Shown: one piece after another, positions 12,817 through 54,523 of the stretch
Layout of the letters: every line of letters starts with the position of its first letter
Numbering within the stretch: the first letter of the stretch is position 1
DNA from: Oikopleura dioica
Taxonomy: Eukaryota > Animalia > Chordata
NCBI GenBank assembly: GCA_907165135.1
Contig: OU015568.1
Span: forward strand, 8,308,001 to 8,372,000
DNA length: 64,000 bases
Reading direction: 5' to 3'
Position numbers and translations under genes: made by a program
The notes under the pieces: generated by a model
What the model was told of the DNA's origin: nothing
Seen by the model: only the letters and a program-made list of their open reading frames with translations
The model's database searches: none

Positions 12817-13311
12817 ATGAATTTGATCCCGACAATCGTCTTCATTTTCGCCACTTTTTGCGACGCCTTCCCAGCTTTCAACCGCGCCAACACCCGACCA
12901 GTCCAACTCTACGCCCGAACAGGCCACTTCATGGACGTCAACGCGAAGGGAAAAGTCCGGCAGACCCACAAGCACAACCGACTCACATCGCTTCTTCATC
13001 TTGAACCAGCAGGTCGCGGCCATCGAATTCTCCTCCGCGCTCTCGCTTCTGGAAAGTACCTGACCATTACTCGCCGAGGCCGCGTCAGGGGAACAACGAA
13101 GAGAAACGAAGCGACTGAGTTCGTCGAAGAGCGAATCAAGGCGAACAACTTCCTGTCCTTTGGCCTTCCAAACACGAACTGCAAACTGATGGTTTCTCAA
13201 CGCGGCTACGAAATTTCCTGCAACAACTCGCGAGCTCAACGGAACAAGATCTCCTTTCTTGCGATGAGAAGCCACTTGCCAAGAGCTCTTTACGATTCCT
13301 TGAATCTCTGA
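12817..13311 (+). CDS. FGF: Intronless fibroblast growth factor with predicted signal peptide (164 aa)
   Basis: Hydrophobic leader MNLIPTIVFIFATFCDA. FGF core motifs QLYARTGHFMDVNAKGKV, LRALASGKYLTITRRGRVRG and EFVEERIKANNFLSF. AATAAA at ~13368. Subfamily not assignable by eye. Confidence 0.88.
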   Translation: MNLIPTIVFIFATFCDAFPAFNRANTRPVQLYARTGHFMDVNAKGKVRQTHKHNRLTSLLHLEPAGRGHRILLRALASGKYLTITRRGRVRGTTKRNEATEFVEERIKANNFLSFGLPNTNCKLMVSQRGYEISCNNSRAQRNKISFLAMRSHLPRALYDSLNL

Positions 13312-47279: not shown

Positions 47280-49265
47280 TTGAAAGTTTTTTGCATGCTT
47301 TTCCACTTTTCTTCTAAGTAAAATGTTTCTATGGACAAACGTCTTTTTTAGAATCAGCCAAGTTGAGAAGATCCAGCCAAAAGTGGATACCTGGAACGTT
47401 TTGCCATCAGTTGACAATCCAACATTTGCCACTCCTTCTTCCACTGAAAACAAGGAAGAGTCCGAAGCCTAACATTATCCCTGCTTAATTCATCTGCTGA
47501 AAGAGTGCGTTGCTTATTTTTACCTGCATTAATATATTTATTACACATAAAAACATAGCGAAGCTCATTTTAATCAATTGATTGCAGGGCAAAGAAAATG
47601 CAGCGCACAAGTAGTATCCTACTTGCTAGGTTTTGGAAAGTAGAGAAAGGCGCGTTCTTTCGCGCGCAAGAATTTACGACTAAAGAAATAAAAATATATC
47701 TGTGCTCCTGATGCAACCAAGACGAGTGTAATTGAAACCCAACTCGCCAGGGAAAAGTTAATGTCCGCGTCGTCTCTTGCAAGAATCGACCTAAACGTTT
47801 CATGCTTGCTTCAAGTTTATGAGCAAACCGGTAGAGAGGGTTATTGACGTAGTAGATGGGAAAGAATATGAATTTGACGGCGTACATCACAGGAATTATT
47901 CGAGGTGGGCTGAATTGATATAAAAACACAATGTACCAGTTATTCATAAAAGTCAGGTGAAGAATCCACAATATAAGAGCGAGTATTGAGTAGCCAGAAG
48001 ATGCAACTGGGATAGGAAACCATTGAATAAGAGTCATAGCAATGCCAAGAAGAGTGACGATGATTCCATTAGTAACAAGCCTGTTGAGCTAAAAACGAAA
48101 CTGAAAAAGAATGACCGAAAACTTGCTCACATTTTCCTTGAGCTGAGGAATCGGGTATGTCTTTGGATATCTGCTGACGTTCCATTTCAATTTGAGCATC
48201 ATTAAAATAGGAAGGACAGGCGACAAAACTTGAAGATAACCAAGACAATCCATCGTCCGTGATTTCAGCTGATGAATGTTCTCTTCGCATGTGGTGTTAC
48301 CTGCGCAATTGATGACATGGCTGTGAAAACCATGATTGAGCCAAGGCACCATCCAACCCAGAAAGGTGTAGTTGCGGAAGAAACCAAGGAAATCCCAAAT
48401 TGTCATTACAATGTTGATCGGGTGAAAAATGTAAGGAAGACATTCGCGCCATGTTGGGGCTTGAGATATTTCGGTTGTCTCTTTTTCACCTTCGATTTTG
48501 TTTCGAGCGAGTATTCTGCCGAAAAAAGAAGTTCGGAACATGCAGAAGTCGTCAGGAAGATCTTTGGGAATCGGTTGAGATGGAAAAAGGCAGAGGGTCC
48601 GGATGGTTATCAATATAGAAATGAACGCCAAAATGAAAATATACGAATCAAGGGGGTAGCCCGACTGGTAGGCAATTTTTCCATACCAAAAAGGAGCACC
48701 TTAATCCATTCATGCAAAAATTGATGAGCCGTGAGGCATTCACCTGAGGCAACAACCAGTGCCGACAAAAATAAGACCACATACGACGAGTTCTCCTTGA
48801 AAATCGGACCAACCATTGTGTTCAACGGAATCCACATGATTACCCCTGTCGAGCTAAGCATTGTTCCAACGAAGAATAAATACGGATTTGTTTGATATAA
48901 ACTTATGCAAAAGAGACCAGCGGTCATTAGAATTCCCATGATAAGGCGGAGGTAGGCAGCGCCGATTTTCAGATACAGAAAACCAAGAATAAATGTTCCA
49001 CCGTTGATTGAAATCAGCATTGAACTCTTGAAGGGCAATTCATTATCTCTAAAAATTCTTTTCTTACGTATATTTCACCAAAAACGGCCTTTGCTTCTTC
49101 GCAGTAAGCTCCTTGAAGAATATCCTCTTCGCTGCAAGTCTCATTCATAAATAACTTCTGCTCTTCAAAAATGAACTGGATCATTGGAAAACCTCGAGTT
49201 ATCAGAGGAAACAAAAATATTTCTATGGCACCTAAGGCGAGCGAAATATAATTGTAAAAACTCAT
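47280..49265 (-). CDS. MFS transporter, SLC43 (LAT3/4)-like; 3' end approximate
   Basis: Many TM segments; TM1 followed by a Cys-pair extracellular loop (NETC...YCEE); LGFLYLKIGAAYLRLI at the position of the SLC43/MFS loop-2 motif. Confidence 0.6.
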
Positions 49266-49925: not shown

Positions 49926-50241
49926 TTAAAGGGTAGGTAAATAATCCTCAGAGAAATCTGCTCTTTGCTTTTCGTCGTGTATATTCTCCTCGATTTCGAA
50001 TTCGTCTACGTATCTTTCGATATAGACCGAGAGAACTCTATCACAGTCTTTTTGAGCTTTAGCATAGTCAAATACATAGATATCCTTCGTACGCGTCTCC
50101 ATCAGAACTAAAGCAATTTGTCAGATCAATTTTGATTTTAACAATACTTTTCATGCAATCGAGTTGGAATTTTTGGAGGTCGCGGATCGTTAAAGCCCAA
50201 GAAAGAGTAAAAAGAAAGCTCAAGCTTTGTATCAACATCAT
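49926..50241 (-). CDS. Small secreted protein, tandem copy 1 (91 aa)
   Basis: Exons 50241-50148 and 50107-49926: MMLIQSLSFLFTLSWALTIRDLQKFQLDCMKILMETRTKDIYVFDYAKAQKDCDRVLSVYIERYVDEFEIEENIHDEKQRADFSEDYLPTL*; TATAAA at ~50270-50275. Confidence 0.85.
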
Positions 50242-50468
50242 TTTTGAGCATCGTCAAGAAAGCCTCATCTTTATACTCAAGCCATTTTTAATTATTGAGA
50301 GTCTCAAGACATTCCAATAATTATTCACACTGCTGGTTCTTACAACTTGTAAGAGTCATTAAGAGTCTAACAGCCAGTACACGTGAAGTTCACGCGACGC
50401 GAACCACTTATACTTATTACTTTTAGAAAAGTATATGATTTATTTATCCAAAAATTAACAGGCTTTTT

Positions 50469-50787
50469 CTATCCAAAAGGACTCAAATAATCTTTGGCAT
50501 AGTCTGGCGCTTCTTCTTCAACATCATGTTTTGCGTTTTTGAAATCGTCTTTGAATGTTTCGATGTAGATATTTAGTACTTTATCGCAGTTTCTCTCAGC
50601 TTTGAAATAGTCGAATCTGTACATATTCGTAGTAAGCTTTTTCATCTGAACTGAAAAATTTTTTTATTCTAAATTTCAATCTTTCTTCCGTACTTTTCAT
50701 GCAATCAAGACGAAATTTTTGAATATCTTCGATGGAAAAAGAAATCGCGGAGGTAAGAAAAAGACTAAGGATCTTTGCTAGCTTCAT
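50469..50787 (-). CDS. Small secreted protein, tandem copy 2 (91 aa)
   Basis: Exons 50787-50694 and 50650-50469: MKLAKILSLFLTSAISFSIEDIQKFRLDCMKIQMKKLTTNMYRFDYFKAERNCDKVLNIYIETFKDDFKNAKHDVEEEAPDYAKDYLSPFG*; TATAAA at ~50842-50847. Confidence 0.88.
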
Positions 50788-51242
50788 TATTGAACAAAAA
50801 AGTGATAATTGAGATGATCTTCTTTTAGAAAGGGCATCATCTTTATACTCTGCTAAATTCAAATTATTCATAGAATCAAATTATTACTATTCGTGATTAA
50901 TAACATCCTATTGCTGAGCATCCTTAGAATCTAATATTCATGAAGCAAACCGTGGCGAATTCTTCGATCTTTGCCGCAAGTATTTTTCTCAGAAACTAAT
51001 TTTTCTCAATTTTGATTGCTTTTATTCAAAGCCGTTGCACTAAATATTTCTACAGAGGGACCTCAATTTAAGCTCACCACCAGAAAGTCCACCGAATTTG
51101 AGGCCCATAACGTCCGGGTCTCCTTATGATCTGACCATGATTACAGGGAGTTACAGGCGTCGTAAGGTACTCCATGTCCAAAATGGACATTTTGGCCGAT
51201 GGAGGTTAACAATCATTCAAAAACTTTTCGTCGAGCTTTATT

Positions 51243-51591
51243 CTAACCAAATGGACTCAAATAGTCTTGTACATAGTCCGGCGCTTCTTCTTCAAGATTA
51301 TGTTCAGCATTTTTGAAGTCCTCTTTGTATCTATCGATGTAAATAGCTATTACTTTGTCGCAGTTTTTTTGGGCTTTGAAATAATCGAATCTGTAGAAAG
51401 TTTTTGTACGCATTTCCATCTGAACTTAAAAAAATATTTTAACATTCTTATTTTTTTAACACAAGATTTCATAAAATAAAAAATGTAGCGTTCTTACTTT
51501 TTATACAATCGAGCTGGAATTTTTGAAGTTCCTCAATAAAAAAACCGATTGCGAAAACAAAAAGAACGCTTAGACTTTTAAATATTTTCAT
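51243..51591 (-). CDS. Small secreted protein, tandem copy 3 (91 aa)
   Basis: Exons 51591-51498 and 51424-51243: MKIFKSLSVLFVFAIGFFIEELQKFQLDCIKIQMEMRTKTFYRFDYFKAQKNCDKVIAIYIDRYKEDFKNAEHNLEEEAPDYVQDYLSPFG*; TATAAAA at ~51638-51644. Confidence 0.88.
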
Positions 51592-51849
51592 TTTCGTAGT
51601 AATACTGAATTGATTGTTATTGAAGAAACGCTTTTCTTTTATACTCGAAAATTTGAATTATTCACTCGATCAAGTTAATATCATTTCTTATAAAAAATGT
51701 TTGCACACGTTCAGGTTGTTCCAAGCCGCCTTTCGCGGTTTAATATTAATAATGCGAGACGGAGCTTATGTTCTAGTATCCACCCTTTCTTCAGGGTTCA
51801 AGATAATAGCTGCTTATTTTATCCAGGATCCAGCCATCGCTTTCAAACC

Positions 51850-52347
51850 AGAGTTGCAAATTTGCTGAGCTGAGTGAGCTGAGCTGGCTGAGTGAGCTGA
51901 GCAGTCGCTCAGCTCAGCTCACTGATTTTCGAAAACGAATTTATCTGCTCAGTTCAGCTCAGCTCAGACAATAATCACTCAGCTCAGCTCATCTCAATTA
52001 TTCTCGAACATGATCTGTTCAGCTCAGCTCAGCTCAGACAAGTATCATTCAGCTCAGCTCAGCTCAATAATTCTAACACAATTTCACTACTAAAAAACAG
52101 TAAAAACAGCTCAACTCAGTTCACTCAGCTCAGCTCAGCTCAAATTAGGGTCTGCTCAGCTCAGCTCAGCTCAACGACCTTAAAAGAAGGTCTGCTCAGC
52201 TCAGCTCAGCTCAATGACCTCTGAAAATGGCCAGCTCAGCTCAGCTCAGCTCAGTGTGCTCCGAAATAGGTCAGCTCAGCTCAGAGAATTTCTCACACAG
52301 GGCAGCTCAGCTCAGCTTAACGAAAATAAAGCCAAATTCGCAACTCT
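51850..52347. mobile_element. ~500-bp non-autonomous TIR element filled with (GCTCA)n microsatellite
   Basis: TIR AGAGTTGCAAATTTG / CAAATTCGCAACTCT (1 mismatch), flanked by TTTCAAACC on both sides (9-10-bp TSD-like). The interior has TGAGC runs followed by many GCTCA runs. Confidence 0.75.
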
Positions 52348-52394
52348 TTTTCAAACCACTTTTAATTTATTGTTTATTCGTTGTAACAGCTTTT

Positions 52395-52713
52395 TTATCC
52401 AAAAAGAGGACTCAAGTAATCCTCTGCATAGTCTGGCGCTTCTTCTTCAAGATCATGATCTCCCTTTTCGAAATCGTCCTTATATTTATCGATATACGCA
52501 GTAAGAACTTTGTCACAGTCTCCTTGCGCTTTAAAATAGTCGAATCTGGCAATATCCCATTCCGTACGGCTCTCCATCAAAACTGAATAATTACTGTTTC
52601 GGAATTCTGCAATTATAAATACTTCTCATGCAATCTAGTTGGAATTTCTGAAGATCGGCAATCGAAAAACCCCAAGCAAGAGTAAAAAGAGAGCAAAGAT
52701 TCTTTAGCAACAT
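52395..52713 (-). CDS. Small secreted protein, tandem copy 4 (92 aa)
   Basis: Exons 52713-52623 and 52582-52395: MLLKNLCSLFTLAWGFSIADLQKFQLDCMRILMESRTEWDIARFDYFKAQGDCDKVLTAYIDKYKDDFEKGDHDLEEEAPDYAEDYLSPLFG*; TATAAA at ~52749-52754. Confidence 0.88.
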
Positions 52714-52982
52714 TATTTTTGCGAAGAAAAAAGATAGAACACACCATCTTTATACTAGTCTCAATCTTAATAATTCACAACGTCAAATTATCATCCAGGA
52801 ATTTGTGTTACTAGCAACGGGAAGCAAGATTGACTTGTTATTAAAATTTCTGTACAAGAGCCGGGGAATGACGTTCCTCTGATGACCTGAATCTCTCAAT
52901 CCATGAACTTTCCAATATGGCATTGTGGATTTAGGTCATTGGCAGACAGTAATATTAATACTGTATTTAACTATAAAAATAG

Positions 52983-54523
52983 ACTGGTGAACTTATCTTG
53001 ACTGGATCCGATGACCTGAAAGCAATCGTTTGGTCTGTTTCTACCGGAGAACCGAAGAGGATTTTGGAAGGCCACAAAGGATACATTTGCTGCTGCGATT
53101 TCTGGTTCAACAAAAAGAAGCAGGAAACCCAAGCAGTGACTGCCTCCGCTGATCGGACGATCAAAATATGGCGAATCGCGGATGGAGTTTGCCAGCTTTC
53201 AATCGAGCATCATTCTCATGTAATGACGAAAATTACAATAAACAACGATTTGATTTTCTCTTCTTCTTATGATAAAACTGTAGCGATGGCGAATCTGCGA
53301 ACTGGCTCTCTGTAAGTCTACGTTAAAAATCATAAATACTATTTATTATTTTTTAGCATACGAAAATTTGAAGGACACCAGCACTCGGTCACGTGCTTCA
53401 ATCTTCTATTTGACGATCCAGCAGAAACGGCGGAGAAGAACTTCTTGACAACTGAGACTTGTGGTGATTCTCGGGATTTTCTTATAACTGGATCGTCCGA
53501 TTGGACTGCGAGAATTTGGGCCATCAAAAGTGGAGGAAAGGGTCAATGATAGTAATGCATAATTATAAGGTAGAGATGAAATGAAGAGATGAAACATTGA
53601 CCCTTGAAAGTTTATCTTCGCACATTCCAAGGTCACACCGGGCCAGTAATTTGCATGGCGCTCGATGTCGCCAGTCGTTCTCTCTTCACCGGCTCTTCTG
53701 ATCACAGCATCAAGAAATGGGACATTTCTAGCGGCGAATTTATCCAGTCAATGAAGGGTCATTCTTCTTCTATCACTCAAATCGCTCTCAAGAATAAAAT
53801 TCTCTTGTCCACCAGTGCGGATTGGAGCGTTCGAGTTTGGTCCGCTGATTATGGAGATTTCATCAAAACGTTTGAAAATGGCCATGAACACATGGTCAGC
53901 ACGATGAAGATTTCTGATGGAGTTGTTGTCACTGGAGACGGAAATGGAGTCATAAAGGTACTAGAGAATAAAAAAATCCTAGAATTAAAACAACATTAGG
54001 TATTTGATCCACGAGTTCTTCACGCAAAAGCTACTCTTCTTGGACATAAATATGCAATCAACTGTCTTTACACTTTCCCTGGGGGCATCATCATCTCGGG
54101 CAGTTACGATTCTTCCGTTCGAATTTGGAACATCAAAACTGTGCTTGAAAAATTAGACCCTGTCGAAGCCGAAGATCCAAAACTGGCCTACGATGATGAC
54201 GAGGAATATTTCGATGGAAGCAGAAAAAATTCGCTCAGAACACCAAGGTAACAGACATCTTCGTGAATTTATAATTGAGTATTCTATTTAGCCCTCAATT
54301 TGATGATACCTACGACACAGACGAAGACGAATTCCTCCGCGTTCAAAACGAAAAAGAACAGATTCGCCGACGAAGTCAAGTTGACGATATGCTTCAATCG
54401 TCTGTCCGTCAAATTGTTGAATACAATCTCATCGACGAAATCACTGATACCGTTCTCAATCAAATCAAAAAGAAAGACTCGACGAAAAAGAAAGTTGAAG
54501 TCCTTCCTGAGCTACTTGAATAA
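52983..54523 (+). CDS. WDR86: WD40-repeat protein 86-like with acidic C-terminal extension (first exon unresolved)
   Basis: About eight GH...WD repeats. FSSSYDKT, GHTGPVICMALDVASRSLFTGSSD and GHKYAINC match the repeat pattern I recall for WDR86. Confidence 0.75.

Follow-up and report, generated by a model that had tools for sequence, protein, structure and literature searches.

The locus raises two questions: what is encoded at positions 49926 to 52713 of the window, the whole 64-kb stretch of DNA that was analysed, and what might the products do? An initial annotation had claimed four co-oriented two-exon genes, each split by a phase-1 intron at the same codon. Segment recurrence and local translation located all four on the minus strand, in the transcription order g4, g3, g2, g1. 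They encode related proteins of 92 aa (g4) and 91 aa (g3, g2 and g1), and all four introns are GT-AG introns in phase 1, placed two codons past the first Cys. Exon 1 of g4 (52623 to 52713) encodes a 15-aa signal peptide and helix 1 with Cys1, and exon 2 (52395 to 52582) encodes a loop, helix 2 with Cys2 and an acidic tail that ends in YLSPLFG before the stop; the 40-nt intron between them (52583 to 52622) is 40, 46 or 50 nt long in orthologues. The exons of g3 (51498 to 51591 and 51243 to 51424) flank a 73-nt intron (51425 to 51497; 67 nt in the orthologous contig L003) and those of g2 (50694 to 50787 and 50469 to 50650) flank a 43-nt intron (50651 to 50693; 41 nt in L001 and L075), and exon 2 of both genes ends in YLSPFG and a stop. 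The exons of g1 (50148 to 50241 and 49926 to 50107) flank a 40-nt intron (50108 to 50147; 49 nt in L007), and exon 2 ends in YLPTL, without a terminal Gly. The acidic, Gly-ended tails that had been claimed for copies 2 to 4 are therefore present in g2, g3 and g4.

The mature chains of g1 to g4 are about 75 aa long and have exactly two Cys each, separated by 24 to 25 residues, and the conserved core motif described in the annotation is found in all four. They are acidic (pI 4.2 to 5.3), have no cationic stretch and contain no N-glycosylation sequon. A signal peptide of about 15 to 16 aa had also been proposed and is present in each protein: the N-terminus has a hydrophobic core, follows the -3/-1 rule in all complete copies and diverges fast.

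Profiles built from exon 2 retrieved nine unnamed proteins, all on marine metagenome contigs in ENA. The orthologous contigs have 75 to 95% DNA identity to the window overall and the same gene order, with the g4-g3 and g2-g1 arrangements retained. L001, L002, L007 and L075 are 91 to 95% identical to the window where measured, and a more distant lineage is represented by L003 to L006, L076 and L077, with L003 to L006 at 75 to 78% identity. The comparison omitted two pattern matches labelled as human-gut metagenome (L035 and L058). Two extra paralogues, g5 and g6, lie in tandem on L009 (8 to 313 and 539 to 856), giving six in total; neither is present in the 64-kb window. The g5 gene is also found on L008, L010 and L011, and its product ends in K-Y-L-S-P-F-G and lacks the A-P-D-Y part of the tail. 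In g6, also found in L012 and P0011, the signal peptide, both Cys and the intron are retained, and the tail is basic and has no Gly.

Comparison of the members, g5 and g6 included, shows that the features common to the family are the signal peptide, helix 1 with a Cys, the loop, and helix 2 with Cys-Asp-x-Val. On these alignments the variable part of the family is the tail. Since g6 has a basic tail without Gly and g1 also lacks the Gly, an acidic tail with a terminal Gly is no defining feature of the family, which weakens its standing as a hallmark in the annotation.

Some further observations concern the gene models of these relatives. In one lineage the introns of g5 (48 nt) and g6 (42 nt) contain no stop and are a multiple of three in length, which would let an unspliced transcript be translated through them in frame; the g5 intron is 46 nt in L011. 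A 3n+1 rule for intron length was rejected because introns of 41, 42, 48 and 50 nt were found. P0012 was considered as a read-through allele and rejected as a gene-calling artefact, the contig showing TAG after the Gly. P0016 (L013 to L015), placed in the cluster of P0006 (g5), is an unrelated bacterial alcohol dehydrogenase, and its placement is a database clustering artefact.

The joined spliced models were used locally, for translation, dN/dS, the tree and tblastn against contig DNA. Protein identity among the window copies is 45 to 64%, with synonymous sites nearly saturated. The annotation had proposed dN/dS among the copies as a check and we ran it on six orthologous pairs (dS up to 1.2): the ratio is 0.07 to 0.18 for the whole CDS and 0.03 to 0.12 for the mature part. 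In three window-versus-contig pairs, intron identity is 59 to 71% and exon identity is 78 to 95%. Intron lengths shift by non-multiples of three (43 versus 41 nt; 48 versus 46 nt) and the joined frame is unaffected. Changes fall on 30% of sites in the signal peptide and on 4 to 12% in each of helix 1, the loop, helix 2 and the tail; at 8.8%, the tail is conserved on a par with the core. The low dN/dS, the changed intron lengths and the fast-drifting signal peptides in orthologues indicate real genes; the likeness of the copies and these ratios far exceed what chance would give. In the tree, orthologues cluster by paralogue, and this grouping, with paralogues only 45 to 64% identical, suggests that each paralogue is conserved separately.

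It might be argued that the array consists of non-genes, such as repeat remnants or pseudogenes, because coverage of g1 to g4 is zero in the RNA runs and the searched collections hold no annotated protein. However, those runs stem from another lineage (reads over the WD40 gene carry many substitutions and most reads are less than 90% alike), dN/dS is far below 1, frames are intact in every lineage, and splice sites and promoters are conserved. We regard this explanation as scarcely credible. Judged from these comparisons, the four array members are real genes under purifying selection.

All four window genes have a TATA box 34 to 60 nt before the ATG, and a near-palindrome, TnAATwATTnA, sits 9 to 11 nt upstream of the TATA box. 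In g4 the promoter (52749 to 52777, minus strand) comprises the palindromic TGAATTATTAA (52767 to 52777) and a TATA box at 52749 to 52754, and in g3 (51638 to 51664, minus strand) the perfect palindrome TGAATAATTCA (51654 to 51664) and a TATA box at 51638 to 51643. The g2 promoter (50842 to 50870, minus strand) has a palindrome copy with one mismatch (50860 to 50870) and a TATA box at 50842 to 50847; the g1 promoter (50270 to 50298, minus strand) has TCAATAATTAA (50288 to 50298) and a TATA box at 50270 to 50275. Both elements are also present upstream of g5, in two lineages, and the region upstream of g6 gives no clear match, so that the composite occurs in five of the six paralogues. In its strict form it occurs three times in the 64-kb window, always within the array, and not at all in 60 simulated windows. 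The composite is partly a matter of shared descent, yet it has outlasted the near-saturation of synonymous sites.

The palindrome resembles a homeodomain-dimer site of the HNF1 type, as found in endodermal secretory genes; a literature search on such a site in O. dioica found no paper. In O. dioica, promoters with a TATA box are for the most part adult-specific and of the sharp type (PMC6389100). From this adult usage and the shared TATA and palindrome promoter we infer co-expression: the four genes would be active together in a single type of secretory cell, differentiated and post-metamorphic. In addition, non-coding DNA upstream of g3 (51592 to 51822) aligns at about 75% to L003, L004 and L005, which exceeds the introns, and is probably a conserved regulatory region.

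Could the proteins be structural or accessory parts of the house, the feeding mucus or a gland secretion, made in bulk like the oikosins, with the Gly perhaps merely ending a turn motif? An adult TATA promoter with a homeodomain-type palindrome would suit such a role, since the oikoplastic epithelium is patterned by homeobox factors, and TATA-driven tandem arrays are also compatible with bulk secretory products. Many oikosins have signal peptides of 14 to 17 aa, similar to those of the array proteins. For about 44% of oikosins no homologue is known, and duplication gave rise to a third of them (PMC3390340). Against this, N-glycosylation sequons, repeats and known matrix modules are all missing from the array proteins, and a strictly terminal Gly is unusual for a matrix protein. 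The searches for relatives also bear on this point. No named or annotated relative was found by word-index searches (which cover only proteins 0.55 to 1.75 times the query length), by an HMMER scan or by a cluster look-up, and deposited oikosins are assumed to be in those collections. We consider a house, mucus or gland role possible and somewhat unlikely.

These external searches, and the folding, were run with pieces of exons or with database proteins. A HMMER scan of 1.84 billion representatives returned only two family members and two chance matches, one of them a TPR protein and the other a long surface protein of bacterial origin. Pfam searches with exon pieces and read-through ORFs gave only sub-threshold noise (DUF7718, E 0.02 to 0.04), the PDB sequence search found no relative (best E 0.45), and neither a peptide pattern nor a tail DNA pattern recovered a relative from the JGI metagenomes. 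ESM Atlas, searched by features and by structure, gave nothing usable. The family motifs were not found in the supplements of PMC3390340, which contain no protein sequences, and the literature searched holds no description of the family and almost nothing on larvacean peptide ligands. Secretoglobin, osteocalcin/MGP and Ciona PEP51 were dropped as candidates because Cys spacing, intron position or sequence did not fit. Every homologue recovered by the BLAST/HMM-type check is thus an unnamed metagenome protein, and the claim of an undescribed family stands for the protein collections and literature searched. We take the family as new and lineage-restricted, and as belonging to a familiar kind: secreted disulfide proteins of small size, encoded in tandem.

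AlphaFold2 modelled exon 2 as two helices, at residues 14 to 38 and 43 to 54 (mean pLDDT 75); the first, of 25 residues, holds Cys2 and the second, of 12 residues, spans the acidic tail. When a database ORF that retains the in-frame intron of g5 was modelled, both Cys lay in helices (mean pLDDT 55). All three helices are amphipathic, and both tail Tyr residues lie on the hydrophobic face of the modelled tail helix. The helical two-Cys core proposed for the family is supported. A single disulfide is predicted from the Cys count and the near-symmetric position of the Cys about the loop. Helix 1 and helix 2 would then form an antiparallel hairpin stapled by this disulfide, on which the amphipathic tail helix may pack. 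A fold search had been suggested as a further check and revealed no structural relative: Foldseek found no match in PDB, and VIA-align with a low-confidence model found generic helical bundles at best (Z 6.5).

Amphipathic helices could also bind lipid, a small ligand or microbes, as in secreted binding or defence proteins of the gut or surface. Amidation is common among defence peptides, and the HNF1-type dimer site that the palindrome resembles belongs to endodermal secretory genes. The acidity of the mature chains and the lack of a cationic stretch argue against such a function, as does selection that is purifying, not diversifying, and it seems to us distinctly unlikely.

The tail was compared across the family. 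Every g2 to g5 sequence has Gly immediately before the stop, with GGA, GGG and GGT as codons and TAA and TAG as stops. The residue ahead of it varies (F, V or D), with insertions and substitutions giving L-F-G, F-D-G and V-G, so that the tails end in YLSPFG, YLSPLFG, YLSPVG (P0014, L076 and L077) or YLSPFDG (L003). In g1 the last residues drift (PTL, PPF, ATL). The pattern suggests that the terminal Gly of g2 to g5 is under selection and fits amidation, not an F-amide pharmacophore. Of the F-amide end that the annotation proposed, the Gly is kept and the Phe is not fixed. Precursors with a bare Gly-stop, such as those of melittin and cecropin, are known PAM substrates. On this model, PHM/PAL would act on the terminal Gly of g2 to g5 and leave the entire protein amidated at its C-terminus, without cleavage by a convertase; a literature search on PHM/PAL in O. 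dioica found no paper. We consider it slightly more likely than not that g2 to g5 are C-terminally amidated. Sulfation of the tail Tyr is predicted to be unlikely. The proposed sulfotyrosine context is weakened by three features: Phe replaces the first tail Tyr in g1, in g5 and in the g2 allele P0001, a Lys precedes the invariant Tyr in g5, and both Tyr positions face the hydrophobic side of the modelled tail helix. The modelling of the tail as an amphipathic helix itself also weakens the reading given in the annotation.

These tails invite comparison with classical prohormones that free a short sulfated, amidated C-terminal peptide of the CCK, gastrin or sulfakinin kind. In g2 to g4 an acidic run is followed by D-Y-x-x-D-Y and an aromatic residue before the terminal Gly, and tail and core are conserved to the same degree. 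However, there is no conserved dibasic site (a single KK occurs, in the g2 loop), and the N-terminal core is conserved beyond expectation for a disposable pro-region. Neither G-W-M-D-F nor G-H-M-R-F occurs in any tail, in agreement with the annotation, which had excluded orthology to CCK, gastrin and cionin. The invariant Tyr lies five residues from the would-be amide, compared with seven in CCK and cionin, and the inconstancy of the first Tyr, the Lys of g5 and the variable penultimate residue also count against release of such a peptide, which we consider very improbable.

Our tentative preference is that the proteins act as intact secreted ligands, of the hormone, paracrine or pheromone type, in a larvacean-restricted family, and we rank this as likelier than parts of the house or mucus. 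It is favoured by the low dN/dS of the mature part, the fast signal peptides, the kept Gly-stop and the shared promoter composite, and by the absence of N-glycan sequons, oikosins being described as highly glycosylated. Against it, the would-be amidated residue varies, unlike typical GPCR pharmacophores, and g1 and g6 have no Gly, yet g1 is equally conserved. If the proteins are ligands, the paralogues would have diverged long ago, each being conserved singly, as expected with distinct partners or receptors. A more specific version is improbable, namely that Oikopleura evolved folded and amidated (possibly Tyr-sulfated) protein hormones of its own, which keep a gastrin/CCK-like tail attached to a helical domain stapled by the disulfide, act on an orphan or CCK-type receptor, and come from a single type of endocrine cell governed by a common promoter code.

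The window resembles O. dioica DNA in its roughly 40% GC, its 40-nt introns and its dense animal genes, including an FGF and a WD40 gene. The FGF gene is an intronless ORF of 164 aa (12817 to 13311, plus strand), whose start resembles a signal peptide and which contains a complete FGF domain (E 1e-14). The WD40-repeat gene (about 52900 to 54000, plus strand) is divergent from g4 and is covered by reads of the other lineage's RNA runs. In the distant lineage, the DNA upstream of g4 (L004 1 to 445) has no match to the WD40 gene that lies in the window above 52780, which suggests either rapid drift or the breakpoint of a rearrangement next to the array. Downstream of g1 is a multi-exon membrane-protein gene (about 48089 to 49265, minus strand) that looks transporter-like by eye; two pieces gave no Pfam match. 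Between g4 and g3 lies a Mutator-like MITE (51841 to 52357); its inverted ends are 15 bp long, the target duplication (TTTCAAACC) is 9 bp, and CTCAG repeats lie inside. The element is absent from the orthologous L002, and RNA reads from the other lineage contain related repeats.

The gene order of the array is stable between lineages in spite of the extreme genome scrambling for which the species is known (PMC11067885). Larvaceans are abundant plankton and close relatives of vertebrates, and their peptide ligands are barely covered in the literature searched. With six paralogues, a promoter signature and a testable modification, this well-supported and apparently unannotated family offers specific candidates for peptidomics, for single-cell mapping and for the de-orphanising of receptors. 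Should it turn out to be a further house or mucus protein, the gain would lie chiefly in annotation.

How, finally, do the array proteins compare with known systems? They resemble the oikosins in being larvacean-specific orphans with short signal peptides and paralogue families (PMC3390340). They differ from them in that no sequence match to a named protein was found and that modules and N-glycosylation sequons are missing. Shared local regulation is described as absent at oikosin loci (PMC3390340), whereas the array genes share a promoter site. The precursors of CCK, gastrin, cionin and sulfakinin are likewise secreted and combine an acidic stretch with a Tyr close to a C-terminal aromatic residue that Gly follows. 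In contrast, the array tails have no (Y)xGWMDF or YGHMRF motif, their Tyr spacing is five, not seven, the penultimate residue is variable, the Gly stands directly before the stop, no basic cleavage site lies behind it or ahead of the peptide, and the proteins hold a conserved disulfide core of about 50 aa. Asterosap, attractin, ALKAL and augurin/ECRG4 are also helical ligands that are small and secreted; the one disulfide of asterosap joins Cys at a similar spacing, and augurin has acidic sulfated Tyr. This likeness is one of analogy only, with no Pfam, PDB-sequence or structural match; the Pfam augurin model gave no match at E up to 1-10, and the conserved basic (furin) site is absent from the array proteins. 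Like PAM substrates, the array proteins have a signal peptide and, in g2 to g5, a C-terminal Gly conserved in all lineages seen. Promelittin and the cecropins share the precursor that ends in a bare Gly-stop, which is sufficient for amidation without a convertase, but they are cationic, membrane-lytic and free of disulfides, whereas the array encodes acidic 75-aa chains with two Cys.
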